NCBI RefSeq assembly: GCF_030028105.1
Contig: NC_092373.1
Location: 135,724,278 to 135,788,277, forward strand
DNA: 64,000 bases
Reading direction: 5' to 3'
Origin: Mobula birostris
Lineage: Eukaryota
Positions within the stretch are counted from its first letter, which is position 1. Every line of letters starts with the position of its first letter. This document shows positions 5,990-59,175 of this stretch, piece by piece. Under the pieces are notes generated by a model. That model made no database searches. It saw only the letters and a list, made by a program, of their open reading frames with translations, and had not been told where the DNA came from. Made by a program: the position numbers and the translations under genes.

Positions 5990-8399
5990 CAGGACATAGG
6001 AGCAGAATTGAGGCCATTCAGCCCATTGAGTCTGCTCCACTGTTCCATCATGGCTGATCCCAGATCCCACTCAAGCCCATACACCCGCCCTCTCACCAGG
6101 TCCTTTGATGCCCTGGCCAATCAGGAAACTATCAACTTTCACTTTAAATATACCCACAGACTTGGCATCCACCACAGTCTGTGGCAGAGCATTCCACAGA
6201 TTTACTACTCTCTGGCTAAAAAAATGTCCTCATGCCTCAATTTTGAGGATGTGCCCTCTAGTTCTAGATACCCCCACCATAGGAAACACCCTCTCCACAT
6301 CCACCATATCTAGTCCTTTCAACATTCAGTAGGTTTCAATGAGATTCCCCCCCCCAATACGTCACATTCTTCTAAATTCCAGTGAGTACAGGCCCAAAGC
6401 AGCAAAAAACACTCCTCACATGTTAACCCCTTCATTCCTGGAATCATCGTCATGAACCTCCTCTGGATTCTCCAATGACAACACATTCTTTCTAGATATG
6501 GGGTCCAAAACTGTTGACAATACTCCCAGTACAGCCTGACTAGTGTCTTATAAAGGCTCAGTGTTACCTCCTTGCTTTAATATTCTATTCCCCTTGAAAT
6601 AAATGCCAACATTGCATTTGCCTTCTTTACCACAGACTCAACCTACACATTAACCTCCTGGGAGTCTTGCATGAGGACTCCTAAGTCCCTCTGCACCTCT
6701 GATGTTTGAACCTTCTCCCCGTTTAGATAATAGTCCGCACTATTGCTCCTTTTACCAAAATGCATTATCATACATTTCCCAACACTGTATTCCATCTGAC
6801 ACTTTTTGCCCCATTCTTCCAATTTGTCTAAGTCCTGCTGCAATCGCATTGCTTCCTCACCACCAACTACCCCTCCATCTATCTTCCGATCATCTGCAAA
6901 CTTTGCCACAAAGCCATTAATTCCATTATCCAAGCCATTGACAAACAATGTGAAAATCAGCAGTCCCAATACTGACCACTGAGGAACACTACTAGTCATT
7001 GGCAGCCAACCAGAAAAGCTCCCTTTTATTCCCACTCGCTGCATCCTGGCTGTCAGCCATTCCGCTATCCATGTCAGTATCTTTCCTGTAACGCCATAGG
7101 ATTTTGTCTTGTTAAGCAGCCTCGTGTATGGCACCTTATCAAATGCCTTCTGAAGATCCAAGTAAATGACATCCACTGCCTCTCCTTTGTTCACCTTGCT
7201 TGTTACTTCCTCAAACAACTCTCACAGATTTGTCAGGTAAGGTTTCCCTTTACGGAAACCATGCTGACTTTGACATATTTTATCATTAGTCTCCAAGTAC
7301 CTCAAAACCTCATCCTTAATAATAGACTCCAACACTTTCCCAACCACTGAGGTTAGGCTAACTGGCCTAATTTCCTTACTTTTGCCTTCCTCCCTTCTTA
7401 GAGTGAAGTGACATTTGCAATTTTCCAGTCCTCTGGGACCATGCCAGAATTCTTGAAAGACCATGACGAATGCATCCATTATTTCTTCAGCAACCTTTCT
7501 CAGGACTCTGAAATGTAGTCCATCTGGTCCAGATGACTCATCCAGCTTAAGACCTTTGAGTTTGCCGAGCACTATTTCCTTTGTAATAGCGATGGCATTC
7601 ACTCCTGCTCCCTGACGCTCATGTACCTTTGGCACACTGCTAGTGTCTTCCACAGTGAAGGCAGATGCGAAGTACCCATTAAGTTCATCTGCCATTTCTT
7701 TGTCCCCCATTACTACCTCACCAGCATCATTTTCCAGTGGTCCAAAATCAATTCTCACCTCTCTTTTACTCTTTATATAACTGACAAACTTTTGCTTTTC
7801 TGCTTCATATTATTGGCTAGTTGGCCCTCATATTTCATCTTTTCACTTCTTATCGCTTTATAGTTGCCTTTTGTTGGACTTTAAAAGCTTCCCACTCACT
7901 TTTGCTGTCTTATATGCTGTTTCCTTGGCTTTTATGCAGTCCTTAACTTCCCTTGTCAGCCACGGTTGCCTACCCCTGCCATTTGAGAACTTCTTCCTCT
8001 GTGGGACACATCTATCCTGTGCCTTGTGATCTATTCCCAAAAACTTCAGCCATCTCTGCTCTGCCATATAGTATCCTCCTCCCCCAATCCACCTAGGCAA
8101 GCTCCTCTCTCATGTCTCTGTAATTCCCTTTATTCCATTGCGATACTGATACATGTGACCTATGCTTCTCCCTCTCAGATTGTAGTATAAATTCAATCAT
8201 ATTATGATCCTCCTAAGAGGTCATTTACATTAAGCTCAGTAATAAGATCTGGGTTATTACACAACACCTAATCTAAGATGGTCTTTCCCTGAGTGTGCTC
8301 AAGCACAAGCTGCTCTATAAGCCATCTTGTAGACATTCAACAAATTCCCTCTCTTGTGATCCAACACCAACCTGATTTTCCCAATCCCCTATGATATTG
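5990..8399 (-). mobile_element. CR1 LINE (RT to EN), interrupted by the RTE insertion; resumes at 12458-12750
   Basis: ORFs 6643..7218 (VAKFADDRKI) and 7222..7758. The EN sequence continues exactly across the RTE. Confidence 0.9.
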
Positions 8400-11300
8400 G
8401 GTGGTCGTCTCTCGGGGTCCGAGGAAGACTAAACATTGTGCAGTCATCTGTGGATACGCAAGTGGCTTCGGAGGCTGAAGGCCGAAGCACACATGTGGTT
8501 GCAGGTTGGACATGGAATGGCGGTTGTTAGAACAGGTGCAGACACAGCTTTGTGGCGTCGGTCTCGTGCTGCTGCAAGGTGCTGATTTCGGTCATCCTCA
8601 GCGTCAGACGCAGCTTTTCTGGTCAGGGCGCGTCACGAAGCCCTGTTGACTGCAGACTCCTCAAGTTGTCGAGGCTGAAGGTCTGTCATTTGATGTACGA
8701 TTTCAGACTGTCTTTGAATCTTTTTTTGCGGGGGCCCTGATTGTGACTGCCATGCCCAAGCTCACGGTAGAGCAGCTGCCTGGTGATGCTTGTTTCACCC
8801 ATGCAGATTACATGGCCAGTCCAGCGTAGCTGGGCCTGGAGGATCCTTGCCTCAATGCTTGTGCTGTTGGCTCTGTCGAGGGCTTCCTGGTTGGTGATTC
8901 AGTCCTGCCATCGAATCCTCATGATCGACCGCAGAGAGCACATGTGAAACTGCTCCAGCTGCTTGATGTGCCTGCGGTACAGGGTCCAGGTTTCACAGCC
9001 GTACAGGAGAGAGGTGAGAACCACAGCCTTGTACACCCTGAGCTTGGTTGAAAGCTGAATGTTCTTGTGATCCAGAACTTTGACACAGAGTTTCCCGAGT
9101 GCCTGGCTGGCTTTCTGGATCCTTGCTATAATCTCTTTGTCAAGGGATCTGTCACTGGAGATGGAATTTCCTAGATACTTGAAGCTCTCCACATTCTTCA
9201 GGAAGCCGTTGATGGTGATACATGGCTGAGGAGGGTGACTGTTTGGTGCAGGTTGCAGGAGAACTTCTGTCTTACTGAGGCTAATTGTCAGGCAGAACAG
9301 CTTTGAGGCTGCGGAGAACTTGTCAACAATCGTCTGCAGGCAGTTCTCCTGGTGGGCCATGAGGGCACAGTCATCAGCAAACAGGGCTTCAGTGATGACC
9401 CTCAACGTTTTGGTCTTTGCAGCAAGGCGTTTCAGGTCAAACATCAATCTGTCTAGGCGATATCTTATGTAAATACCCAGGTCCAGGTCCTTAACAACAT
9501 GCTTTCAGCATCTGGGTGAAGAAGAGGTTGAAGAGCACTGGTGCTATAACGCACCCTTGCTTCTTGCCATTTGAGATGTTGAAAGTCTCAGATGGGGAAC
9601 CATCTGAGAACACGTCTCCTGTCAGGCCATCGTGGAGCAGGCGGATGTGTGTAGTGAATTTCTGCGGGCAGCCAAGCTCTCTAAGGATGATCCAGAGCGC
9701 GTTTCTGTTGACTGTGTCAAACGCCTTCATCAGATCAATGAAGACAGAGTATAATGTCATGTTCTGTTCCAGGCACTTCTCCTGTATCTGTCTCACTGCA
9801 AAGATCATGTCGACCGTGCTGCGTTCGGGACGAAAACCACATTGCGACTCGGGAAGGTTCTCTTCTGACTCTGTTGGAATCAGTCTGTTGAGGATGATGT
9901 AGGCGAGGATTTTTCCAGCAATGGAAAGTAGTGAGATGCCTCTAGTTCCCGTAGTCGGTCCTTGAACCTTTATTTTTGTAGAGAGCGATTATTGTTGCGT
10001 CTCTGAGGTTAGGGGGCATCTCTTCTTCTTCCCAAATGCTAGTCAGAGTGCTGTGGAAAGTCTCAAGTGACTCCGTGCTGAGTGCCTTGTACAGTTCAGC
10101 AGGTATCCATCCTTGCCGCTGCTCATCTGCGTAACAGCCTTCTTGACTTCATCTATCGAGGGAGGATCATCTAGTTCCTCGTGAATAGGCTGTTGGGGGA
10201 TTTGGTTCAGAGCAGACTAGTCGACCGATGAAGGGCGGTTCAGGAGCTGGCTGAAATGCTCTTTCCGTCTGTGTTGGATGCTCTCTTTGTCCTTTAACAG
10301 TGTGGTTCCATCAGCAGACAATAGTGGAGATGAGCTAGATCTTGAGGGGCCAAAGATCATCTTGATGGAGCTGAAGAGCAGCTTCAAGTTGTTGATGTCG
10401 GTGAAGCGTTGCACCTCTTCAGCTTTCCTATCCCAGCACAGGTCATGCATCTTGCGAATTTCCAGTTGGGCATGGGCCTGAAGGGACTTGAACCTCTCTT
10501 CTTTGGGAATGGAGCTTGGGTCGTTTTGCCACTCCATGAATGTTTTGTCCTTCCTGGCCAGGAGATCTTTGATGCCACTGTCATTCTTGTCGAACCAATC
10601 TTGATGATTCCGGTCCTTGGGGCCGAGGACTGACTTTGCTGTCTCCATCACCATCTCTTGAAACTGATTCCACTTCTGGGTTGGCCCACTAGTTAGTGGT
10701 CTGTTGGCAGACAGCTTCTCATCAAGGGTGGTCTGGAACTTGCGAAGATACAGCGGCTCTTGGAGTCTGGCGGTGTTAAAAGCTGTTCTGATGAACTTAG
10801 GGCGCTTGGGATGGTGGGGAGCAATACGTAGCTTCAGTGTGGTGCGGACAAGCCTGCGATCAGTCCAGCACTCCGCTCCTCGCATGGCTCTGGTGATGAG
10901 GACATCCCGGATTTCTCGGCGACATACTATAACGTAGTCAATCATGTGCCAATGTTTGAATCTTGGGTGCATCCATGTTGTCTTGTATTTGTTCACCAGC
11001 CTGAACACTGTTTGTGATGAGGAAGTCATATTCTACACTTTTGCTAAGGAGCAAGAGGCCGTTGCTGTTCATATTGCCAATAACATGTTTGCCTAGAACC
11101 CCTTCCCAGCGACTGTGATCGCAGCCTACTCGGGCATTAAAGTCACCGAGCAGGATTAGTTTGTCATTGGCAGAGTCTGAGCACAGAACAGAGCTAAGGT
11201 CGGCGTAGAACTGTTCAATGGTCTCGTATTTGCTGGTCACAGTGGAGGCAGAAGCACTGATGACTGTTGCGTAACGTTTGTGGCTGAGGGGCAGACGTAG

Positions 11301-12457
11301 CCACATAAGCTTTTCGTTGATTCCCACGGGCTGGTCAGAGAGTTGTTTCACGAAGCTCGACTTGACTGCAAATCCAACTCCATGAATCCTCTCTTCATAC
11401 TGCACTTTTCCTTTCCAAAAGAAAGTGTAGCCGCTGGTGGTTTCAGTCAAGGATCCTTCCTCCACAAGCCTGGTTTCACTGAGGGCTGCGATGTTGATGT
11501 TGTAGCGTGAAAGTTCCTCGGCAACAAGGGCTGTTCTTCTTTGGGACCTTGCTGAGTTCTCTCTGTCCGTGAGTGTACGGACGGTCCATGATCCTACCAG
11601 AACTTTCTTTCTTCTCCTTTGAGGGTAACCACACTGGTGGATGAACTGCCAGCTGCGGCAAGCTGGCCAGTTATCTGTCTGTAGAGCAGGCAATGTTTAG
11701 GCCACCTTTTCTAAGCCCCTCCCTATCAAAAGGTGACCAGTGCTGTCCTGAAAAGGGCTGCTCAGTCACCGTTGGTGCTGCCGGACTCCTCAGCTACCCT
11801 GGGTACAGAGAAGAACGACCACTTGTCCAAAGGCCGCCTACGTGCGGGTTTGTGACTACAATTCCCAGTGGTCACCTCCACCTGCTGCTTCGCCACTCCC
11901 CCATCGCCATAGGACTTGTAGGAATTGAAAGTTGGGAGATGAATGTTGCACAATGTAACCAGTGCGTGAAAGATATTAAAGAGAAAAAGCCTTGCACAGA
12001 GATGATCCCACTCTCTCGGCCTCAGAAGTCAGGATCCAGTGGCACGAAGAATCATTACGTCTGGCAACTTCCTTGGCTGCATTGGATGTCTGTGTCTTCT
12101 TAAATGCTCTGCCACGCCCTACGCACTCCACAATGCGCTGCTGCAACGCCTTCTCAGCCGTTGGACCGCTGGGGTTTCCTCCGCCTGATCCACCAAAGCA
12201 GTCTTCGCATGCTGGGATGAGCAAGTTCCTATCTCACCAAGGGTTTCAGACCCGTTGGCTACCCTCACCTGGTTTAGCTGGCCTGTCGAAACCATTGCCC
12301 GGGGTGTGGCCACTGTCACATGCAAACAGCTACGAGGAGCCACAGGTGAGAGTTGGGTGTTGGTGGGGACCAATAGATGACGAGCCACTCCAAGGAGTGC
12401 GACAAGCCCCCCATCTAGAGGTGCTACCCCTCCCACACACCCCATGCACCCTTCTAG
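8400..12457 (-). mobile_element. Full-length (~4.06 kb) RTE-clade LINE: 5' UTR, APE endonuclease, RT, C-terminal C2H2 finger; frameshifted
   Basis: EN: GSWTVRTL...AALSETRL...LLGDFNARVG (10938..11693). RT: FIDLMKAFDTVNR, KQGCVIAPVLF, LFADDCAL. C-terminal CPTCNHMCASAFSLRSHLRIH at ~8450-8520. 7-bp TSD GATATTG at 8393-8399 and 12458-12464. Confidence 0.92.
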
Positions 12458-23148: not shown

Positions 23149-24741
23149 TAGAAACATAGAAAATAGGTGCAGGAGTAGGTCATTCTGCCCTTCAAGCCTG
23201 TACCACCATTCAGTATGGTCATGGCTGATCATCCAACTCAGAACCCCGTACCAGCCTTCCCTCCATACCCCCTGATCCCTTTAGCCACAAGGGCCATATC
23301 TAACTCCCTCTTAAATATAGCCAATGAACTGGCCTCAACTGTTTCCTGTGGCAGAGAATTCCACAGATTCACCACTCTCTGTGTGAAGAAGTTTTTCCTA
23401 ATCTCGGTCCTAAAAGGCTTTCCCTTTATCCTCAAACTGTGACCCCTCGCTCTGGACTTCCCCAACATCGGGAACAATCTTCCTGCATCTAGCCTATCCA
23501 ATCCCTTTAGGATTTTATATGTTTCAATAAGATCTTCCCTCAATCTTCTAAATTCCTAATGAGTATAAGCCTAGTCGATCCAGTCTTTCATCATATGAAA
23601 GTCTTGCCATCCCAGGAATCAATCTGGTGAACCTTCTTTGTACTCCCTCTATGGCAAGGATGTCTTTCCTCAGATTAGGGGACCAAAACTGCACACAATA
23701 CTCCAGGTGTGGTCTCACCAAGGCCTTGTACAACTGCAGTAGCACCTCCCTGCTCCTGTACTCGAATCCTCTTGCTATGAATGCCAGCATACCATTCGCC
23801 TTTTTCACCGTCTGCTGTACCTGCATGCCCACTTTCCAATGACTGGTGTACAATGACACCCAGGTCTCGTTGCACCTCCCCTTTTCCTAATCGGTCACCA
23901 TTCAAATAATAATCTGTTTTCCTGTTTTTGCCACCAAAGTGGATAACCTCACATTTATCCACATTAAGTTGCACCTGCCATGAATTTGCCCACTCACCTA
24001 ATCTATCCAAGTCACCCTGCATCCTCTTAGCATCCTCCTCACAGCTAACACTGCTGCCCAGCTTCATGTCATCCGCAAACTTGGAGATGCTGCATTTAAT
24101 TCCCTCATCTAAATCATTAATATATATTTTAAACAACTGGGGTCCCAGCACTGAGCCTTGCGGTACCCCACTAGTCACTGCCTGCCATTCTGAAAAGGTC
24201 CCGTTTATTCCCACTCTTTGCTTCCTGTCTGCCAACCAATTCTCTATCCACATCAATACCTTACCCCCAATACCGCGTGCTTTAAGTTTGCACACAAATC
24301 TCCTGTGTGGGACCTTGTCAAAAGCCTTTTGAAAATCCAAATATACCACATCCACTGGTTCTCCCCTATCCACTCTACTAGTTACGTCCTCAAAAAATTC
24401 TATGAGATTCGTCAGACATGATTTTCCTTTCACAAATCCATGCTGACTTTGTCCGATGATTTCACCGCTTTCCAAATGTGCTGTTATCACATCTTTGATA
24501 ACTGACTCTAGCATTTTCCCCACCACCGATGTTAGGCTAACTGGTCTATAATTCCCCGGTTCCTCTCTCCCTCTTTTTTTAAAAAGTGGGTTACATTAGC
24601 CACCCTCCAATCCTCAGGAACTAGTCCAGGATCTAAGGAGTCTTGAAAAATTATCACTAATGCATCTACTATTTCTTGGGCTACTTCCTTAAGCAGTCTG
24701 GGATGCAGACCATCTGGCCCTGGGGATTTATCTGCCTTTAA
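23149..24741 (-). mobile_element. 5'-truncated, younger CR1 inserted into an older CR1
   Basis: 283-aa RT ORF 23675..24526 (SKFADDMKLG); 7-bp TSD TGGTTCA at 23142-23148 and 24742-24748. Confidence 0.92.
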
Positions 24742-26829
24742 TGGTTCAGAAAGACTGGAAAAGTGCAAATGTCACTCCACTCTTCAAGAGGGAGGGAGGC
24801 AGAAGAAAAGAAACTATAGGCCAGTCAGTCTGATATATCAGTGGAGTAAAGGAAATTACAGAGTCATGAGAGAGGAGTTGACCACAATTGATTAGAAGGT
24901 TGGAAAGATTTTGGAGTCAATTTGTAAGGATGTGGTTTCAGGTTACTTGGAGGCACATAATAAAATACAATAGACCATAGTCAGCATGGTTTCCTCAAGG
25001 GAAAATCTTGTCTGACAAATCTGCTGGAATTCTTTGAAGAAATAACAAGCACGATCGACAAGGGAGAATCAGCTGATGTTGTGTACTTGGATTTTCAGAA
25101 GACCTTTGACAAGGTACCAGACGTGAGTCTGCTTAACAGGCTATGAACCCATAGTATTACAGGAAAGATTCTAGCATGGATAAAGCAGTGGCTAACTGGC
25201 AGGAGGCAAAGAGTGGGAATAAAGGCAGCCTTTTCGGGTTGGCTGCTGGTGACAAGTGATGTTCCACAGGGCTCTGTGGTGGGACCGGTTCTTTTCACAG
25301 TTTAAGTTAATGATTTGGATGATGGATTTGTTGGCTTTGTTGCAAAATTTGTAGATGATATGAAGGTGGAGGGGCAGGTAGTTTTGAGGAAGTCGAGAGG
25401 TTACAGAAAGACTTAGGCAGATTAGGAGAATGGACAAAGAAGTGGCAGATGGAATACAGTGTATGGTCATGAACTTTGGTAAAGAATAAAAGGGTTGACT
25501 ATTTACTAAATGGAGAGAAAATACAAAAATCTGAGGTGCAAAGGGACTTGGGAGTCCTTGTGCAGGATACCCTAAGTGTTAATTTGCAGATTGAGTCTGT
25601 GGTGATGAAAGCGAATACAATGTTAGCATTCATTGCAAGAGGACAAAAATATAAAAGCAAGAATGTAATGTTCAGACTTTATAAAGCACAGCTGAGGCCT
25701 CACTTGGGAGTATTGTGAGTGGTTTTGAGCACCTTATCTTAGAAAGGATGTGTTGAAACTGGAGAGGGTTCGAAGAGGTTCACAAAAATGATTCCAGGGT
25801 TGAACAGCTTGTCATATGAAGAGTGTTTGATGGCTCTGGGCCTGTATACACTAAAAATCAGAAGAATGAGGGATGATTTCATATCAAATGGTGAAAGGCC
25901 TTGATAAAGTGGATGCGGAAAGGATGTTTCCTATGGTGGGAGAGTCTATGACCAGAGGACACAGCCTCAGCATAGAGGGCATCCTTTTAGAATGGAGATG
26001 AGGAGTAATTTCTTTAGCCAGATAGTAGTGAATCTGTGGAATTTGTTGCCCTAGGCAGTTTTGGAGGCCAAGTCGTTATGTATATTTAGGGCAGAGGTTG
26101 ATAGATTCTTGATTGGTCAGGGCATGAAGGGATATGGGGGCAAGGCAGGAGATCTTGTTGTCTCCCCAGCTCCTGAGACAACAAGCCTAGCCTTATCAAT
26201 CTCTCTTCATTATCGTAATTCTCCAGCCCAGATAACATCCTGGTGAAACCCTTCTTTACCTTTCCTGATGCAATCGTGTCCTTTGTAGAGTACTCACTAC
26301 TCCACCTGTATCCCTACTAAAGTACCATAATCTTACTGTTCTAATATTCTGTGCCCCAGTTACAGAAGGCAAGCATCCCATGGGCCTTCTTCACCATTTC
26401 ACTTCCTATGCTGCTACTTTCAGAGGTCCGCCATCTGTCCCTCAAAGCTCCCTAAAGCCCTGCCATTCATCATACATGTCCTACCATTACTTTTCCTTCT
26501 AAATATCAGCACTTCATATATAACAGCTTTTACTTCCATCAGTAATTCTTCCTGGCATGACAGCATCAGCTATTCTGATTGTATGAGAATCTACTGTTCA
26601 TCAAAGCTACAACAGCCTTGTTTAAAAGAACGTGAAAGTGGCAAGTGGTGTATAACCCCACCCTTACTCTGCACCTGGTCACGTTATAATTACGCAGAAT
26701 GGTGGAATACACCAGCCAACTTCGATAGTTACACTATATTGGGATATATGGCGGCACTGTATTAGATATACCGGTACGCCTACTTGTTAATCATTGTTAA
26801 TTAAGGGGCAGTGTTGGATCTTAATTGTT

Positions 26830-29175
26830 GGTTAAGTGTTGGATCTCCTGTTAGGGAATGAGACAGGGCAGGTGACGGAGGTATTTGTTGGGGAGCACTT
26901 CGGGTCCAGTGACCACAATACAATTAGTTTCAGAGTAATTATGGAGAAGGATAAGACTGGGCCTAGGATTGAGATTTTTGATTGGAGAAAGACTAACTCT
27001 GAGGAGATGCGAAAGGATTTAGAAGGAGTAGATTGGGAAAATTTGTTTTATGGGAAGGATGTAACAGAGAAATGGAGGTCATTTAAAGGTGAAATTTTGA
27101 GGGTTCAGAATCTTTATGTTCCTGTTAGGTTGAAAGGAAAGGTTAAAAGTTTGAGAGAGCCATGGTTTTCAAGAGATATTAGAAACTTGGTTCAGAAAAA
27201 GAGAGGGATCTTCAAAAAGTATAGGCAGCTTGGTGTTAATGAGGTACTCGAGGAATATAAAGAATGTAAAAAGAATCTTAAGAAAGAAATTAAAAAAGCT
27301 ATAAAGAGATACGAGGCTGCTTTGGCAAGTAAGGTGAAAATAAATCCAAAGGGATTCCACACTTATGTTAGTGGCAAAAGGATAGTGAGGGATAAAATTG
27401 GTCCCTTGGAGAATCAATGTGGATGGCTATGTGTGGAGCCAAAAGAGATGTGGGAGATTTTGAACAATTTCTTTTCTTCGGTATTCACTAAGGAGAAGGA
27501 TATTGAATTGTGTAAGGTAAAGGAAACAAGAACGGTAGTTATGGAAAGTATGACAATTATAGAAGAGGAAGTACTGGCACCTTTAAGGAATATAAAAGTG
27601 GATAAGTCTCCGGGTCCGGACAAGATATTCCCGAGGACCTTGAGGGAAGTTAGTGTAGAAATAGCAGGGGCTCTGACAGAAATATTTCAAATGTCATGAG
27701 AAACGGGGATGGTGTCGGAGGATTGGCATATTGCTCATGTGGTTCCATTGTTTAAAAAGGGTTCTAAGAGTAAACCTGGCAATTATCGGCCTGTGAGTTT
27801 GACATCAGTGGTGGGTAAATTGATGGAAAGTATTCTTAGAGATGGTATATATAATTATCTGGATAGACAGGGTCTGATTAGGAACGGTCAACATGGATTT
27901 GTACGTGGAAGGTCATGTTTGACAAATCTTATTGAATTTTTTGATGAGGTTACTAAGAAAGTTGACGAGGGTAAAACGCTGGATGTTGTCTATATGTTCT
28001 TCAGTAAGGCCTTTGACAAGGTTCCACACGGAGGGTTAGTTAGGAAGGTCCAATTGTTAGGCATTAATATGGAAGTAGTAAAATGGATTCAGCAGTGGCT
28101 AGATGGGAGACGGCAGAGAGTAGTGGTGGATAACTGTGTGTCAGATTGGAGGACGGTGTATAGCGGTGTGCCTCAGGGATCTGTACTGAGTCCAATGTTG
28201 TTTGTCATATATATTAATGATCTGGATGATGGGGTGGTAAATTGGATTAGTAAGTATGCAGATGATACTAAGATAGGTGGCGTTGTGGATGATGAGGTAG
28301 GTTTTCAAAACTTGCAGAGAGATTTAGGACAGTTAGAAGAGTGGGCTGAAAGATGGCAGGTGGAGTTTAATGCAGAAAAATGTGAGGTGCTATATTTTGG
28401 TAGGACTAATCAAAATAGGACGTACATGGTAAATGGTAGGGCATTAAAGAATGCTGTAGAACAGAGGGATCTAGGAATAATGGTGCATAGTTCCCTGAAG
28501 CTGGAATCTCATGTGGATAGGGTGGTGAAGAAAGCTTTTGGTTTGCTGGCCTTTATTAATCAGAGCATTGAGTATAGGAGTTGGGATGTAATGTTGAATT
28601 TGTATAAGGCATTGGTAAGGCCAAATCTGGAGTATTGCGTATAGTTCTGGTCACCGAATTATTGGAAAGATGCCAATAAAATTGAGAGAATACAGAGGAG
28701 GTTTACTAAAATGTTGCCTGGGTTTCATCTCCTAAGTTACAGAGAAAGGTTGAACAAGTTAGGTCTTTATTCTTTGGAGCGTAGAAGGTTGAGGGGGGAC
28801 TTGATAGAGGTGTTTAAAATTATGAGGGGGATTGATAGAGTTGCCGTGTTTAGACTTTTTCCATTGAGAGTGGGGAAGATTCAAACAAGAGAACATGAGT
28901 TGAGAGTTAAAGGGCAAAAGTTTAGGGGTAACATGAGGGGGAACTTCTTTACTCGGAGAGTGGTATCTGTGTGGAACGAGCTTCCAGTAGAAGTGGTTGA
29001 GGCAGGTTCGATGTTGTCGTTTAAAGTTAAATTGGATAGATATATGGATAGGAAAGGAATGGAGGGTTATGGGCTGAGTGCAGGTCGGTGGGACTAGGAT
29101 AGGGTAAGAGTTCGGCATGGACTAGAAGGGCCGGGATGGCCTGTTTCTGTGCTGTAATTGCTATATGGTTATATG
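26830..29175 (+). mobile_element. 5'-truncated CR1, the best-preserved copy in the window
   Basis: ORFs 26836..27699, 27709..28644 and 28711..29097 are all in one frame, split only by two nonsense codons; KYADDTKIGG; ATGGTTAT-type repeat tail. Confidence 0.93.
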
Positions 29176-46787: not shown

Positions 46788-46851
46788 ATGAAGATCAAGC
46801 AAATGCTGAGACCTTTTGCAGCAATTCTCCTTTTCACTGTTCTTGTAACAG
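46788..46851 (+). CDS. JCHAIN: JCHAIN exon 1 (signal peptide, 64 nt coding)
   Basis: MKIKQMLRPFAAILLFTVLVT + G|GTGTGA donor, phase 1. Confidence 0.85.
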
Positions 46852-49800: not shown

Positions 49801-52800
49801 CTGTCTGCTGTTTTATAGCCAATGCTGAAAGCCATCTTCTAGTTAAATCAAAATGTAAGTGCCTGACTGTGACGTCCAAAACAGTTGTTACCGAATTGCC
49901 TACTGGTGAACGTGTGGAGCAGCTTATGAGAGATATAAGAATTATGTAAGTAAATGCATTTTAATTTGATGATCACACTGCCTTATGCTAATTTTTGCTA
50001 CTAATTAGAAAGTGGTTGCAGATAATTTCGTTACTGTGGGTCACTGAATTAGTTTATCAGACGGAATCAGATCACATCCCCACATCTAACAATCGTTTTA
50101 TTTCCAAAATGAACATGGAAGCTTGAAAACTATAAAAGCTAAGATTCATTTCTAAGTGCAAGAACTCCATTGTTAACTTCCAGTAGGAAGAGAAGCATTA
50201 GTTAAGGTCCATTTATTAAAGTTGGTGCCTTTTTCACATAACTGTTGCTGCATTAAGCTAAAAACTGTATGTAGTGGTATCTGTAGTGAAGATATCTCAC
50301 ATAATGAATAGTTAGTTGTCGTTGCTGGGCAAAGAGCAGTCTATGAGCAATTCACAGGCTGAGTAGTGACTATAAGAAATACTGGGCTCATGGAAATGAA
50401 TAGACACCATCAACCCACATGTGGAAGTCTTATCTATCCCCAAAGGCACTAACGTAATGTGATTCCTATTTATTTCTTGACAACTATTTTATCTAAATTT
50501 CTCGAAATTGTTTCTAGATATTGAGATAATTAATTCATGTGCTGACATAAAAGCCTGCTGTGTATCCTTTTCTGGAGCAACCTTATGTCATCCAAAACTG
50601 ATTAATGTTCAACTTGATGTAATCATGCATCAGTTAAGTTTGCAAATTAACTGATGCAATAGATATGCTATTGTTATTGTTATTGCTACGTAGCTGATTA
50701 TTTTAGTTATTGACTGTTTCCTTTAATTAACAACATTACCCTAACCACATCAGCAATGATCTGTGCAGAATGATGGCAGGGCATTTAATTGCCTATCTCC
50801 AGCACTCCTAAAATGACTGCCAATTGTTCTTTTATTACAGCGTTCCTATGAGGAGCAGAGTGAACATGTCAGATCCAACCTCCCCTATTCGGACGAAGTT
50901 CGTCTACAAGATTTCTGATTTGTATGAAATTTATTTTTGTCTCTTTTTTTGCAATATATATTTAGAACGGGTTTCAGAATACACCCTACACCTGGCATCT
51001 GGTGTTTGTACTTCAATATATAGCACGCATGGTGTAACTAGGCCTGCTCAAGGCATGGCAGGTTACTCAGAAATGAATGGATAGCGAGGGCAGCACAGTG
51101 GAGTAATTAGTAGAGATGCTGCTGTGTTCTGCGTTTATTCCTCACCTCCAGTGCTGTTTTGTGGAGTTTGTACTTTCTCCTTGTAGCCAAGTGGAATCCA
51201 GGTTGGGAGACCATAAGACGTTGGAGTGGAATAAGACCAGCTGGCCCATCGAGTCTGCTCCATCATTCAATCATGGTGATCCTTTTTTTCATCTCCTCAT
51301 CAACCCCTGTTCCCAGCCTTCACCCTGTAACCTTTGATGCCATGTCCAATCAATAACCTATCAATCCCTGTCTTAAATACACCCAACGACCTGGCCCCCA
51401 CAGCTGTATATGGCAACAAATTCCACAAATTCAGCAGCCTTTGGCTAAAGAAATTTCTCCACATCTCTGTTTTGAAAGGGCACCCCTCTATCCTGATGTT
51501 GTGCCCTTTTGTCCTCGACTCCCCCACTATGGAAAACATCCCTTCCACATCGACTCTGTCTAGGCCTTTCAACATTCGAAAGGTTTCAATGAGATCCCCC
51601 GTCATCCTTCTGAATTCCAGTGAGTACAGAGCCATCAAAAGTTCCTCATATGATAACGCTTTCATTTCTGGAATCTTCCTTGTGAACCTCCTCTGGACCC
51701 TCTTCAATGCCAGCACATCTTTTCTAAGATGAGGGGCCCACAACTGTTCACAATACTCAAGGTGAGGCTCACCAGTGCCTTATAACGCCTCAGCATCACA
51801 TCCTTGCTCTTGTATTATAGACCTCTTGAAATGAATGCTAACATGGCATTTCCCTTCCTCACCACCAACTCGACCTGCAAGTTAATCCTTAGGGTGTTCT
51901 GCACAAGGACTCCCAATTCCTGGATTTTCTCCATGTTTAGAAAATAGTCTGCACATTTATTTCTACTATCAAAGTACATAACCATGCATTTTTCAACATT
52001 GTATTTCATTTGCCACTTTCTTACCCATTCTCCTAATCTATCTAAGTCCTTCTGCATCCTACCTGTTTCCTCAACACTACCTGCCCATCCACTAATCTTC
52101 ATATCATCTGCAAACTTGGCAACAAAGCCATCTATTCCATCATCCAAATCATTTATATACAGCATAAAAAGAAGTGGTCCCAACACTGACCACCAACACC
52201 ACTAGTCACTGGCAGCCAACTAGAAAAGGATCCTTTTATTCCCACTCGCTGCCTCCTACCAATCAGCCAATGCTCTAACCATATTAGTAACTTGCCTGTA
52301 ATATCATGGGCTCTTAACTTGGTGAGCAACCTCATGTGTGGCACCTTGTCAAAGGCCTTCTGAAAGTCCAAATATACAACATCCACTGCATCCCCTTTAT
52401 CTTTCCTACTTGTAATCTCCTCAAAGAATTCCAACAGATTTGTCAGGCAGGATTTTCCCTGAAGGAAACCATGCTGACTTTGTACTTACTACCTTTGCGG
52501 TCCTATATCCACTCTTATTTCTCTTTTATTTTTAACATACTTGAAAAAACTTCTAATATCCACTTTGATATTATTTGCTAGCTTGCTTTCATATTTCATC
52601 TTTTTCCTTCTAATGATTTTTTTAGTTGCTCTCTGCAGGTTTTTAAAAACTTCCCAATCCTCTACCTTCCTACTAATTTTTACCATGGTTGTGCTATTTT
52701 ATCATTCAAGTATTTCTTCATTTTTGGAATACACATGTCCTGCACCTTCCTCATTTTTCCCAGAAACGCACACCATTGCTGCTTTGCTGACAACCCTGCC

Positions 52801-55800: not shown

Positions 55801-57921
55801 TAAAGGAGTACAGAGATGTAGGACTGTAATGTAATTTTCCTTTAAACCTATAAGGATGCAGGCGTACACTGAATAGGGATATAGGAAGGGCAAAGAGAGC
55901 CTTGGCAGATAAGATAAAGGAAATTCATAACAGATTCTTTAACTATAACAAAGCAGTAACCAAAAAGAGAGTAAGATCCCCTTAAATATCAGTGTTCATC
56001 TATGGTGGAGCCATGAGATATGGACAATGTCTTAAGTCAATAGTTCCTGTCTGTATTTACCATGGAGAAGGTCGAGCAAGCTAGGGATTTCAGGGAAGAG
56101 AGCCAGAATGTCCTGAAACATATTGCTACCATGAAGGAGAAGGTGTTAGTAGATTTAAAGGTGAATAAATCCCTGGGGCCCGACCAAGTGGACATTTTAG
56201 GAATACAGGAATTTGCTAAGGCCCTGGCAGAGGTAGATATATCAGCATTGGGCTACAGCTGATTTTTTTACCCAAAAAAAAGGCTGTAAGGACAACCCAA
56301 TGAACTACAGGTGAAAAGCCAAACATCAGCAGTGGTAAAGTTACTGGAAGGAATTCCAACAGACAGGACTAGCTGCGTGGGTAAAAGAGAGGACTGATTT
56401 GAAATAGGTAATATGGTTTGTGCATGGAACAGTGTGTCTCAATTTGATTAAGTTTATTGAAAAGGAAACCAAGGGAATTGACAAAAGCAGGGCAGTAGAA
56501 GTTGTCTACGTGGACTTTCGCAAGGCTTTCACAGAGGCCCTGTGTGGTAGACTGGTCTGGCAGGTTAGATCACATGGAATCCAGGGTGAGCTAGCCAACT
56601 GGATACAGAATTTGCTTGTTGGTAGTAATCCAAAGATGAAAGTGGAGATTGTTTTTTTTAGTTTGGAGACAAGTGACCAGTGGCGTGCCGCAAAGATTGG
56701 CGCTGGGTTCCTTATTGCTGGCGGTTATATTATCAATTTGGATGACAGTGTAGTTGGAATAGTAAGCAAGTCTGCGGATGACACCAGAATTGGTGGCATG
56801 GTGAACAGTGAAGAAAGTTACCTAACATCACAACAAAATCAAGATAAACTGGGAAAATAGGCCAAGGACTGGCAGATGAAAGTGATGCATTTTGGGAAGT
56901 TTAACCAGAGCAGAACATACAGGCCAGAGGACTGGGTAGCGTAAGAGAATAAAGAGGCCGAGGGGGACAAATACATACCTCCCTGAAAGCGGTGACACAG
57001 ATAAATGAGGTTGTGAAGGAGGCATTTGGCATACTTACCTTCATCAGTCAGGACTTGGGATGTCACGTTAGAGCTGTAGAAAACTTTGAAACTGTACAGT
57101 GTGCAAATCTGGTACGTAGCTATAGACAAAATGTCATTACATTGAAGATTCACGGGGATATAACTGGGATTGGATCATGAGAAGAGAGTGGATAGGCTGG
57201 GGTTGTTTTCTCTGGCGTGTAGGAGGCCGAGGGTGACCTTTACAAGATCACGAGGGGCAAAGATAAAATGAATGCTCCGAGCCCTTTTCCCAGGGTGAGG
57301 GGAGTCTAAAAGTAGAGGGGAAAGATTTAGTGTGAAATGACAAAGATTTAAAGGAGGCCTAAGGATCACATTTTCCACACGGATGGCTGTGGGAATATTG
57401 AACAAGTTGCCAGAGGAAATGACAAAGGTGGGCACAATAACATTTGAAAGAAAGACAGGTACGTGAATAGGAAAGGGTTAGAGGGATATGGGCAACTGGG
57501 GCTAGCTCAGGTAGGCAACGTGTTTGGCCTGGACAAATTGGGGAGAAAAGAGCCTGCTTCAGTGCAGTAGAACTTTATAACTCTCTGAGAACACACTGTG
57601 ATTTTCAGAAGACAGCATTTCAAGTGCAATGGAAATTACATCTCTAATCAAATATTTTGTTACAGCTGCAAGAACTGCAACCAAGAACGAACCTTGCCTG
57701 GAGAACCCGAGTGCAAGCCCCCACCTCCTCCTGCAGATACCTGTTACAGCCGTCCCAGCACATGCCTGCACCAAACAATCGACATGGGAAATGGCATAAA
57801 AATGGACGCTATTCAGAATCCTGAGTGTCTCAACTATAAACCAAAACACTGGATCCCAAAGCCTACACTGACTCCTATTGAAACTACACGAGATTTTGCT
57901 TCCATGTCAGATGCTCCTTAG
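46788..57921 (+). CDS. JCHAIN: Immunoglobulin J (joining) chain, 175 aa, 4 exons: MKIKQMLRPFAAILLFTVLVTANAESHLLVKSKCKCLTVTSKTVVTELPTGERVEQLMRDIRIIVPMRSRVNMSDPTSPIRTKFVYKISDFCKNCNQERTLPGEPECKPPPPPADTCYSRPSTCLHQTIDMGNGIKMDAIQNPECLNYKPKHWIPKPTLTPIETTRDFASMSDAP
   Basis: join(46788..46851,49819..49945,50841..50921,57666..57921); GT-AG introns, phases 1/2/2, frame intact. The block RDIRIIVPMRSRVNMSDPTSPIRTKFVY matches human RNIRIIVPLNNRENISDPTSPLRTRFVY, including the N-glycosylation sequon. KCKC and all 8 Cys present; exon sizes 64/127/81 versus human 64/124/81. Confidence 0.96.
47590..49220 (+). mobile_element. Old, heavily decayed CR1 in JCHAIN intron 1
   Basis: Recognisable CR1 ORF2 remnants and a 3' tail (AAAAGGCCTACTTTTGCTTCAATTTCTTATG). 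Confidence 0.65.
49819..49945 (+). CDS. JCHAIN: JCHAIN exon 2 (127 nt, KCKC)
   Basis: TTTTATAG| acceptor; NAESHLLVKSKCKC...MRDIRI; AT|GTAAGT donor. Confidence 0.95.
50841..50921 (+). CDS. JCHAIN: JCHAIN exon 3 (81 nt, NMS glycosylation site)
   Basis: TTTTATTACAG| acceptor; VPMRSRVNMSDPTSPIRTKFVYKISD; TT|GTATG donor. Confidence 0.97.
51208..53475 (-). mobile_element. CR1 LINE in JCHAIN intron 3
   Basis: ORFs 51300..51743, 51815..52186 (VAKFADDMKI), 52153..52434 and 53134..53397 (EN). Confidence 0.9.
53557..53733. repeat. Fold-back palindrome of two head-to-head Penelope-type terminal repeats
   Basis: Left arm GCAAACACATACAAAATGCTGAAGGAACTCAGC...TCAGGCAGCATC is the reverse complement of the right arm GACGCTGCCTGA...CTCCTCCAGAATTTGGTGTGTGTTGC. 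Confidence 0.8.
54099..54654 (+). mobile_element. Penelope-like element remnant: GIY-YIG C-terminal fragment between inverted pseudo-LTRs
   Basis: CIRLGYPEEVAVAEHCIRNGHRINFDGTK...KEAIE...NFNKDE at ~54310-54490; 54099-54225 is the reverse complement of 54526-54654. Confidence 0.78.
55790..57585 (+). mobile_element. Old CR1 in JCHAIN intron 3, ending ~80 bp before exon 4
   Basis: ORF 56420..56860 (VYVDFRKAF...VSKSADDTRIGG) and a CR1 tail. Confidence 0.8.
57666..57921 (+). CDS. JCHAIN: JCHAIN exon 4 (six Cys plus C-terminal extension)
   Basis: TTTTGTTACAG| acceptor; CKNC...C...TCY...C...C pattern; TAG stop at 57919-57921; AATAAA at 58412 and 58612. Confidence 0.92.
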
Positions 57922-59175
57922 GTTGTTCTTCAAAGAACTGCATTTAATTCTTCAGAGAATGTCATTAGTACATTTTCCACTTTGACATTGTCACTGTTGC
58001 TTTTTGTCATCCCTAAACAGATCATAAAATGCTTCATAGCTTCAAAGCATGTTTTGTGCAAATCCTTTTCTTTACATTACAGCATCGTGTGCAATATGCC
58101 AATTTGCTTCTCTCTTTTGGGGACAAACAAAATTAAGCCAATGGATAAATCTGGCAGACTACCACTTAATAAGTTTTGTACAAAAAGGAATTGCAGAAGT
58201 ATATGAATATCTAACACTGAATTCTGTGGTCAGCATGTAACAATAACAATAACTATTCTAGGAAATCAAAGGCAGATGATGTCTTTAGCAGTCTGACCAC
58301 ATTCAATAATTCTTGTCGGCAACAAAAAAGTGGTGCACTTTTTGAGAAATATTTCAAACTAAACACAGAGCAAAGCTACATTATTACATAAGCATAGTAT
58401 AGGTGAAGTTTAATAAACATTTTAAAAATATTGCTTTCATTATTCCGAATTGCTAATATTTTCAAATACTTCACTGACAAAATCAAAATCCACAAACATA
58501 AAATTAATTCTTCAGGATTAAAGAATTACTTTAGTAATAATGAAGTTTAATATCTCATTAAAGATTGGTTATAAACTTTATTAAAAACATTTTTGCTGTG
58601 TTTTGCGTGAGAATAAAACATAAATCTTTGGTTATGAATCAATTGGTATGATCTACATTCAGATGGAGAAGAATTGAACAGTGAAGGAAGTGAAAGAGGA
58701 TGTAATAATGTACAGCAACTCTCCTTTGCTCATGTCGCATTATACAAATGCAGGAGTGCTGAAAATACCCCCAAACTCATTTCATATAAAGCAAAATCTG
58801 TCACCCTCATTGTAATAATAATGCCCTGGTTGTGAGTGGAACAGTGGAAAGAGCCTAGCCAGGAATGGTAAATGGCGAAGAAAGAGACAGGCTGAGGGAA
58901 GAGGGAGGAAGAGAAATATATATATATTGGGCATGGAGAGGTTTGTGGAGGGGAATAAGGGTGTTGGTGGATGGGAACTCATTGGATCATTATTGCAAAA
59001 TGAAGCTGAGGGCTTGAAGACCTTCCAAGTGGGGAATATAGCTGGTTAAAGACTGGGCAGCCATAGTGAGGTGGGAGTGGGAGCTCGGGAATTACGTTGT
59101 CAAAATAGAGGAGGGCATGCAAGATGTGCTGGATGTAGGTAGGAAAGAACTGGACAAGAGCTTCCAAGACTTAAT

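Follow-up and report, generated by a model that had tools for sequence, protein, structure and literature searches.

A conserved C-terminal tail on the J chain of the manta ray Mobula birostris and other cartilaginous fishes

A 64,000-nucleotide stretch of the Mobula birostris genome (NC_092373.1, positions 135,724,278 to 135,788,277; the whole stretch is called the window below) carries a four-exon gene for the immunoglobulin J chain, the product of which continues for 30 residues past its last cysteine. The J chain decides whether immunoglobulin M (IgM) forms pentamers and, in tetrapods, also serves carriage across epithelia by the polymeric immunoglobulin receptor (pIgR). The tail is the genuine, transcribed C-terminus of the manta J chain; it is an extension peculiar to cartilaginous fishes, placed after the cysteine with which hairpin 3 closes. 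Taking all lines of evidence together, we suspect, with a probability of roughly 0.6, that the tail bears a conserved, autonomous motif that is accessory to polymerisation and docks on a partner.

The manta J chain and its transcribed tail

The forward-strand reading frame at 57598-57921 runs through ...CKNCNQERTLPGEPECKPPPPPADTCYSRPSTCLHQTIDMGNGIKMDAIQNPEC, continues as LNYKPKHWIPKPTLTPIETTRDFASMSDAP and ends at a TAG. A first-pass annotation, made from the letters alone, had described a 30-residue Pro/Thr-rich tail past the last cysteine. Its frame and coordinates are exact and agree with the annotated protein, but the enrichment is only moderate, with five prolines and four threonines among the 30 residues. 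An open stretch of 30 codons is by itself not beyond chance, and the significance of the tail thus has to come from its conservation among relatives rather than from its open length.

Contigs from public sequencing runs that contain the stretch (small runs, labelled 'RNA?') were compared over 56900-59100. Contig depth is about 10 in the intron, jumps to 1e5-6e5 precisely at 57666 and is very high on exon 4 only, as fits a plasma-cell product. In all four runs, drawn from three studies, the loose end before 57666 reads GACGAAGTTCGTCTACAAGATTTCTGATTT, the last 30 bases of exon 3. Given this exon 3/exon 4 junction and the step in depth, the contigs represent spliced messenger RNA, and an assembly error that deleted an earlier stop is therefore ruled out. 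The contigs read through the tail and its stop codon as far as about 58376, and the frame is unchanged. No differing letters were seen in the coding sequence (CDS) in runs X1 and X3, and run X4, from a related organism, differs in the tail by a single substitution (Ala169 to Asp), which falls on a residue that also varies between species. The first-pass annotation had named both an assembly error and alternative splicing within exon 4 as possible sources of a false tail. RNA-type contigs that cross the tail with an unchanged CDS dispose of the former; as to the latter, no joints inside exon 4 occur in the RNA-type contigs of the four runs, although contigs may miss rare splice forms.

The exons were found through their motifs and by inspection of splice sites, and the spliced translation is identical to the annotated protein P0001 of 175 residues ('immunoglobulin J chain-like [Mobula birostris]'). 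All introns are GT-AG, and the four coding exons are joined in phases 1-2-2, as is always the case in JCHAIN (PMC10801876). The parts of the gene are as follows:

46788..46851, + strand: exon 1, coding part; signal peptide MKIKQMLRPFAAILLFTVLVT and the first base of Ala22; donor GTGTGA
49819..49945, + strand: exon 2; holds the KCKC motif; alone matches Pfam Ig_J_chain with E=1e-4
50841..50921, + strand: exon 3; VPMRSRVNMSDPTSPIRTKFVYKISD, with the N-glycosylation sequon NMS; alone matches Ig_J_chain with E=5e-9
57666..57921, + strand: exon 4, coding part with its stop TAG; holds the CKNC motif, a Pro-rich stretch, the equivalent of hairpin 3 and the tail
57826..57828, + strand: last cysteine codon, TGT (Cys145 of the precursor, equivalent to mammalian Cys134); AIQNPEC aligned to tetrapod ALTPD[SA]C
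57829..57918, + strand: 30-codon tail, from the frame, the alignment of relatives and the RNA contigs
57859..57918, + strand: conserved terminal motif K156-P175, KPTxxP[IV]ETTxDxxSxSDAP
57919..57921, + strand: stop TAG; same position in Pristis and Heptranchias (TAG) and Rhincodon (TAA)
57922..58376, + strand: 3' untranslated region (3'UTR), by the extent of the RNA-type contigs (ends at 58370-58376, one of them in adapter sequence)

Membership of the J chain family follows from a match to the Pfam profile Ig_J_chain (PF15097) of 84.1 bits, against a cut-off of 27, over residues 25-99. Solved J chains in the PDB match manta residues 12-125 with E values of 1e-15 to 3e-20. Neither exon 4 alone nor the tail has a Pfam match, which fits the low conservation known for the C-terminal half of J chains. 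The CxC (KCKC in exon 2) and CxxC (CKNC at the start of exon 4) motifs are present, eight cysteines follow residue 22, and the N-glycosylation block N-[ILM]-S-D-P occurs as NMSDPTSP in exon 3. The gene is single-copy within the window. The mature chain is basic, with a pI of about 8.6, and cartilaginous-fish J chains are likewise basic (PMC10801876).

Conservation and loss of the tail

Protein searches gave 15 cartilaginous-fish J chains, and the tail is carried by 12 species: Mobula, Hypanus, Pristis, Heptranchias, Pristiophorus, Cetorhinus, Mustelus, Rhincodon, Hemiscyllium, two species of Scyliorhinus and the chimaera Callorhinchus. All 12 end in SDAP, across batoids, squalomorph and galeomorph sharks and the chimaera, so that the conservation in relatives on which the first-pass annotation had made the tail's meaning depend is borne out by the alignments. 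The tail has two parts, a variable linker of roughly 10 residues (LNYKPKHWIP in the manta) and a conserved motif of 20, which stands at the free C-terminus as K-P-T-x-x-P-[IV]-E-T-T-x-D-x-x-S-x-S-D-A-P-COOH and which the manta tail fits. Invariant residues of the motif include P157, T158, P161, D167, S172, D173, A174 and P175, and the TT pair is nearly invariant. The spacer ahead of the motif differs in length between species. Galeomorph sharks and the chimaera keep the motif though the preceding hairpin has lost its cysteine or is deleted. Given that the motif is retained without an intact hairpin, it would be a self-contained short linear motif rather than part of a folded domain.

Fitch changes were counted on the accepted species tree for 11 species. 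The mean number of changes per column is 2.05 for the last 20 residues of the tail, compared with 1.95 in exon 2, 2.09 in the core of exon 4, 0.78 in exon 3 and 3.33 in the loop before the last cysteine. Judged from these alignments, the last 20 residues of the tail are as conserved as exon 2. Nine of the 20 columns show no change at all, while a simulation that distributes the 41 changes evenly yields 2.4 such columns on average (P<5e-5), and neighbouring columns change three to seven times, so that the tail mixes fixed with hypervariable positions. At the DNA level, five relatives were compared (Hypanus, the two Scyliorhinus species, Cetorhinus and Mustelus stood outside this comparison). 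Between Mobula, Pristis, Heptranchias and Rhincodon, differences in the fixed codons are confined to synonymous third positions, and the position of the stop is identical. The terminal conservation in sharks, rays and chimaeras would thus argue for a functional add-on rather than for an error or a neutral read-through.

The batoids also include natural losses of the tail. The J chains of the skates Raja eglanteria (P0008) and Amblyraja radiata (P0003) are batoid orthologues of 122 residues that are 73-78% identical to that of the manta over the shared part. A TAG after CYGRNI or CYGRSI eliminates both hairpin 3 and the tail, each of which the manta has, and in Amblyraja radiata this TAG stands right after CYGRNI in every copy of exon 4. 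Downstream, the former loop and tail are still readable in frame (...HWNPQPTAPSTETTHDSASMSDV) as an untranslated remnant, which is decaying: some copies have gained further stops, and a 9-bp deletion has taken out Ala-Pro-stop. In the numbfish Narcine bancroftii (L004:17283-17500; a single assembly), the Glu codon of IETT has changed from GAA to TAA. This remnant is decaying as well, with THDSV followed by a second stop, TGA, and small deletions. On the evidence of these sequences, the motif is lost twice in batoids by nonsense mutations with the gene intact.

The Amblyraja radiata locus is itself unusual. Across L002:17725-23242 and L003:1205-15395, one set of exons 1-3 is followed by at least seven tandem copies of exon 4, spaced 1.9-3.7 kb apart. 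Such a tandem array of a terminal exon might provide alternative last exons.

An engineered counterpart of the skate truncation exists for the human protein. Pentamers remain largely intact, with a hexamer shoulder, when the human J chain lacks hairpin 3 (residues 108-139; PMC11729874), so that the hairpin is non-essential but raises the efficiency of pentamer formation. The human mutant is a laboratory construct, and its mammalian parent has no tail past the hairpin. Given the nonsense losses in batoids and the pentamers formed by the human chain without hairpin 3, the motif would be accessory to IgM polymerisation and not required for it.

The manta C-terminus is not of the tetrapod type. 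The first-pass annotation had taken as its premise that the mammalian J chain stops three residues past the cysteine, and this agrees with what was retrieved: 60 of 67 non-chondrichthyan J chains end two or three residues past the last cysteine (CYPD, CYE, CFAE), the exceptions being fragments, odd isoforms and the coelacanth. The tetrapod J chain (human; PDB 6KXS, 6UE7, 7K0C) has the same gene structure and intron phases as that of the manta, and shares with it the CxC and CxxC motifs, the eight cysteines and the N-x-S-D-P block. Tetrapod chains, however, are acidic, whereas the manta chain is basic and runs for 30 residues after its last cysteine.

Nurse shark, Rhincodon (P0011), Hemiscyllium (P0028) and Scyliorhinus (P0013) have orthologous four-exon J chains that are basic or neutral, in which the N-terminal half with its N-glycosylation block is conserved and the C-terminal region is unlike that of tetrapods. 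Their terminal ...KPT..P..T.D..S.SDAP motif is the same as in the manta. In the manta, stingray, sawfish and sixgill-type sharks, none of the eight cysteines has been lost and the hairpin-3 segment (GNGIKMDAIQNPEC) can be recognised, whereas galeomorph sharks have six mature cysteines and lack the last one together with part of the hairpin-3 segment. Given six cysteines in galeomorphs and eight in batoids and Heptranchias, the published statement that the shark J chain lacks cysteines fits one clade only. In the galeomorph chains (P0009, P0010, P0011, P0012, P0013 and P0028), KCKLL replaces KCKC in exon 2.

The J chain of the coelacanth Latimeria chalumnae (P0021) ends soon after the equivalent of Cys6, and its ACYNLDTDRNLTQQ aligns with tetrapod TCYAYDRNKC. 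Given this early end, hairpin 3 is absent, as it is in skates, and no related tail is present. The 12 residues that follow the last cysteine of this chain were considered as an IETTRD-like tail, and this was rejected, as the alignment places them in the CY-x-YDRN region of a truncated chain. Coelacanths have lost IgM (PMC10663602).

Other features of the window

Upstream of the J chain gene are remnants of retrotransposons of the long interspersed nuclear element (LINE) type, at 6643-11693 (- strand) and 23675-28644 (both strands), whose open reading frame (ORF) fragments encode reverse transcriptase (RVT_1) and endonuclease/exonuclease/phosphatase domains. Outside the J chain gene, fragments of this kind, coding for LINE-type reverse transcriptase and endonuclease, make up the larger ORFs of the window. 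Nothing in the window reaches the threshold of an Rfam family. In intron 3, a piece of about 35-40 nucleotides at 57454-57492 recurs in many unrelated RNA contigs from three runs, with loose ends on both sides, and is in all likelihood part of an expressed repeat. Over 400 nucleotides of the 3'UTR (57922-58320), Mobula and Pristis are 78-79% identical, a value equal to that of coding exon 4, and Heptranchias can still be aligned at 60-64%. This likeness suggests either a conserved regulatory 3'UTR or very slow local evolution.

What the tail may do

If the tail is functional, it would act through a motif tethered to the J chain core by a linker of variable length. Our committed guess, made from sequence, is that an exposed, probably extended and possibly O-glycosylated tail would dock through its invariant positions onto a partner. 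The likeliest partner may be the Fc platform of IgM, on the face that is occupied by domain 1 of pIgR in mammals, and a tail docked there would perhaps help to stabilise or cap the J-containing pentamer. Alternatively, the tail may bind a receptor or a secretory-pathway factor that only cartilaginous fishes have. The first-pass annotation had also proposed O-glycosylation, which is plausible from the residues themselves: P-T-x-x-P is a context favoured by N-acetylgalactosamine (GalNAc) transferases, and it is invariant in the tail. The further suggestion of that annotation, that the tail might obstruct an interface of the mammalian type, is speculative.

Several observations weigh against a conserved, docking motif. 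Pairwise Nei-Gojobori (NG86) estimates of omega, the ratio of nonsynonymous to synonymous change, range from 0.17 to 2.25 among four CDS. By maximum likelihood on four taxa, the 30-codon tail has an omega of 0.80 (p=0.52), its last 20 codons one of 0.58 (p=0.19) and exon 4 as a whole one of 0.67 (p=0.055). The test of dN/dS that the first-pass annotation had proposed thus gives values for the tail that are below 1 (0.58-0.80) but not significantly so, in codon tests that are underpowered, four taxa being too few and the whole of exon 4 fast-evolving. At the nucleotide level the identity of the tail is 0.63-0.77, which does not exceed the figure for the 3'UTR in the closest pair. Two lineages of batoids live without the motif, so that any function would be dispensable there. 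Lastly, an AlphaFold2 model of the monomer, built from a 14-sequence alignment, has a mean predicted local distance difference test (pLDDT) score of 47.6. Residues 148-175 are below 50, which is weak evidence, compatible with a disordered tail, and the score is low throughout, so that the model says little about the tail. Low confidence is to be expected here, as the J chain folds only inside IgM.

These observations would also be expected of a neutral or weakly constrained read-through, in which the original stop was lost in an early ancestor of the cartilaginous fishes and the residues persist through slow evolution and have no function. Tail omega that is not significantly under 1, a 3'UTR and a skate pseudo-tail that are still recognisable at what would be a slowly evolving locus, two losses with the gene retained, and the lack of tail structure in AlphaFold2 all fit with it. 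However, an unconstrained tail would hardly leave nine of 20 columns untouched among neighbours that change so often, and frame, length and stop position have been kept in the 12 species back to the split between chimaeras and elasmobranchs. Once an upstream stop exists, as in the skate and numbfish remnants, stops and deletions are gained. Nor is the sequence frozen, given a synonymous tree length of about 2.4 per codon among the four taxa. With substitutions so over-dispersed and the ORF maintained, we consider neutral read-through unlikely.

It is also conceivable that there is no extension, and that the terminal ...SDAP is the counterpart of tetrapod ...SCYPD, the extra length having been inserted upstream. 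MAFFT did set tetrapod SCYPD under chondrichthyan MSDAP (alignment A3). Yet the same alignment keeps A[IVL]xNPE opposite ALTPD, and in batoids and squalomorphs the cysteine follows directly (NPEC vs TPDSC). As A[IVL]xNPEC aligns there with tetrapod ALTPD[SA]C, the last manta cysteine is, as had been proposed, the equivalent of Cys134. The placement of the ends by MAFFT is a terminal-gap effect, and SDAP has neither Cys nor Tyr, all of which makes this explanation very improbable. We give even less credence to mimicry of the immunoglobulin secretory tailpiece, by which the tail would insert into the tailpiece beta-sandwich. It was considered on account of a visual likeness (PTL...MSD.A) to the human mu tailpiece PTLYNVSLVMSDTAGTCY printed in PMC10457309. 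Local alignments are not above shuffles (P = 0.05-0.76 across 11 tails), the tail profile matches no IgM chain in the PDB at E<=10, and the tail has prolines and lacks a hydrophobic strand and a cysteine. A tailpiece-like identity was accordingly rejected, there being no significant similarity to the mu tailpiece and no cysteine in the tail.

A more serious alternative, though still a doubtful one, goes back to the first-pass annotation and holds that the tail is the ligand of a dedicated cartilaginous-fish receptor (for transport or clearance, or Fc-receptor-like) that replaces the tetrapod pIgR interface. The two premises taken from the literature in the first-pass annotation both hold: in mammals the Cys-bridged loop at the C-terminus is needed for binding of pIgR and secretory component (PMC11729874, PMC4279169), and no pIgR homologue was found in shark genomes (PMC4016189). 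The manta motif emerges from the region that touches secretory component in mammals, and a free C-terminal motif on a variable linker is typical of recognition motifs. Against this, no candidate receptor is known, skates and numbfish manage without the motif, and the role of the elasmobranch J chain, whose C-terminal region is described as unique, is regarded as polymerisation only (PMC10801876). The divergence of the shark C-terminus, as an argument against transport of the mammalian type, was published in 2003 (Hohman, as relayed in PMC4279169) and has been repeated in reviews.

Hohman is also said to have found in 2003 that nurse shark J chain transcripts are abundant in spleen and absent from intestine, which would count against a dedicated transport receptor as well. 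For these reasons we favour an autonomous motif that is accessory to polymerisation and docks on a partner. Rather tentative is the more specific proposal, also made from sequence, that the motif docks a candidate partner of J-containing polymeric IgM specific to cartilaginous fishes, be it a receptor for transport or clearance or a factor of the secretory pathway. If this were true, there would be a pIgR-independent route for polymeric antibody in the oldest jawed vertebrates, one that skates and numbfish have abandoned.

The novelty of these results is modest: the family was already known, the observation on it holds, and the comparison across species adds a little that is new. In a limited literature search, we did not find descriptions of a group-wide terminal SDAP motif or of its independence from hairpin 3, nor of the eight cysteines in batoids and squalomorphs or the two nonsense losses. 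The practical gain is also modest, and consists of a defined peptide of 20 residues and deletion constructs for studies of the structure and binding of shark and ray IgM.

From the perspective of antibody evolution, the persistence of the motif through more or less the entire history of the group suggests that the J chain has an additional task particular to this lineage, or at least that the IgM pentamer is completed differently here. The motif does not depend on the hairpin through which the receptor is bound in mammals. Skates and numbfish are natural knock-outs, which makes the question testable.

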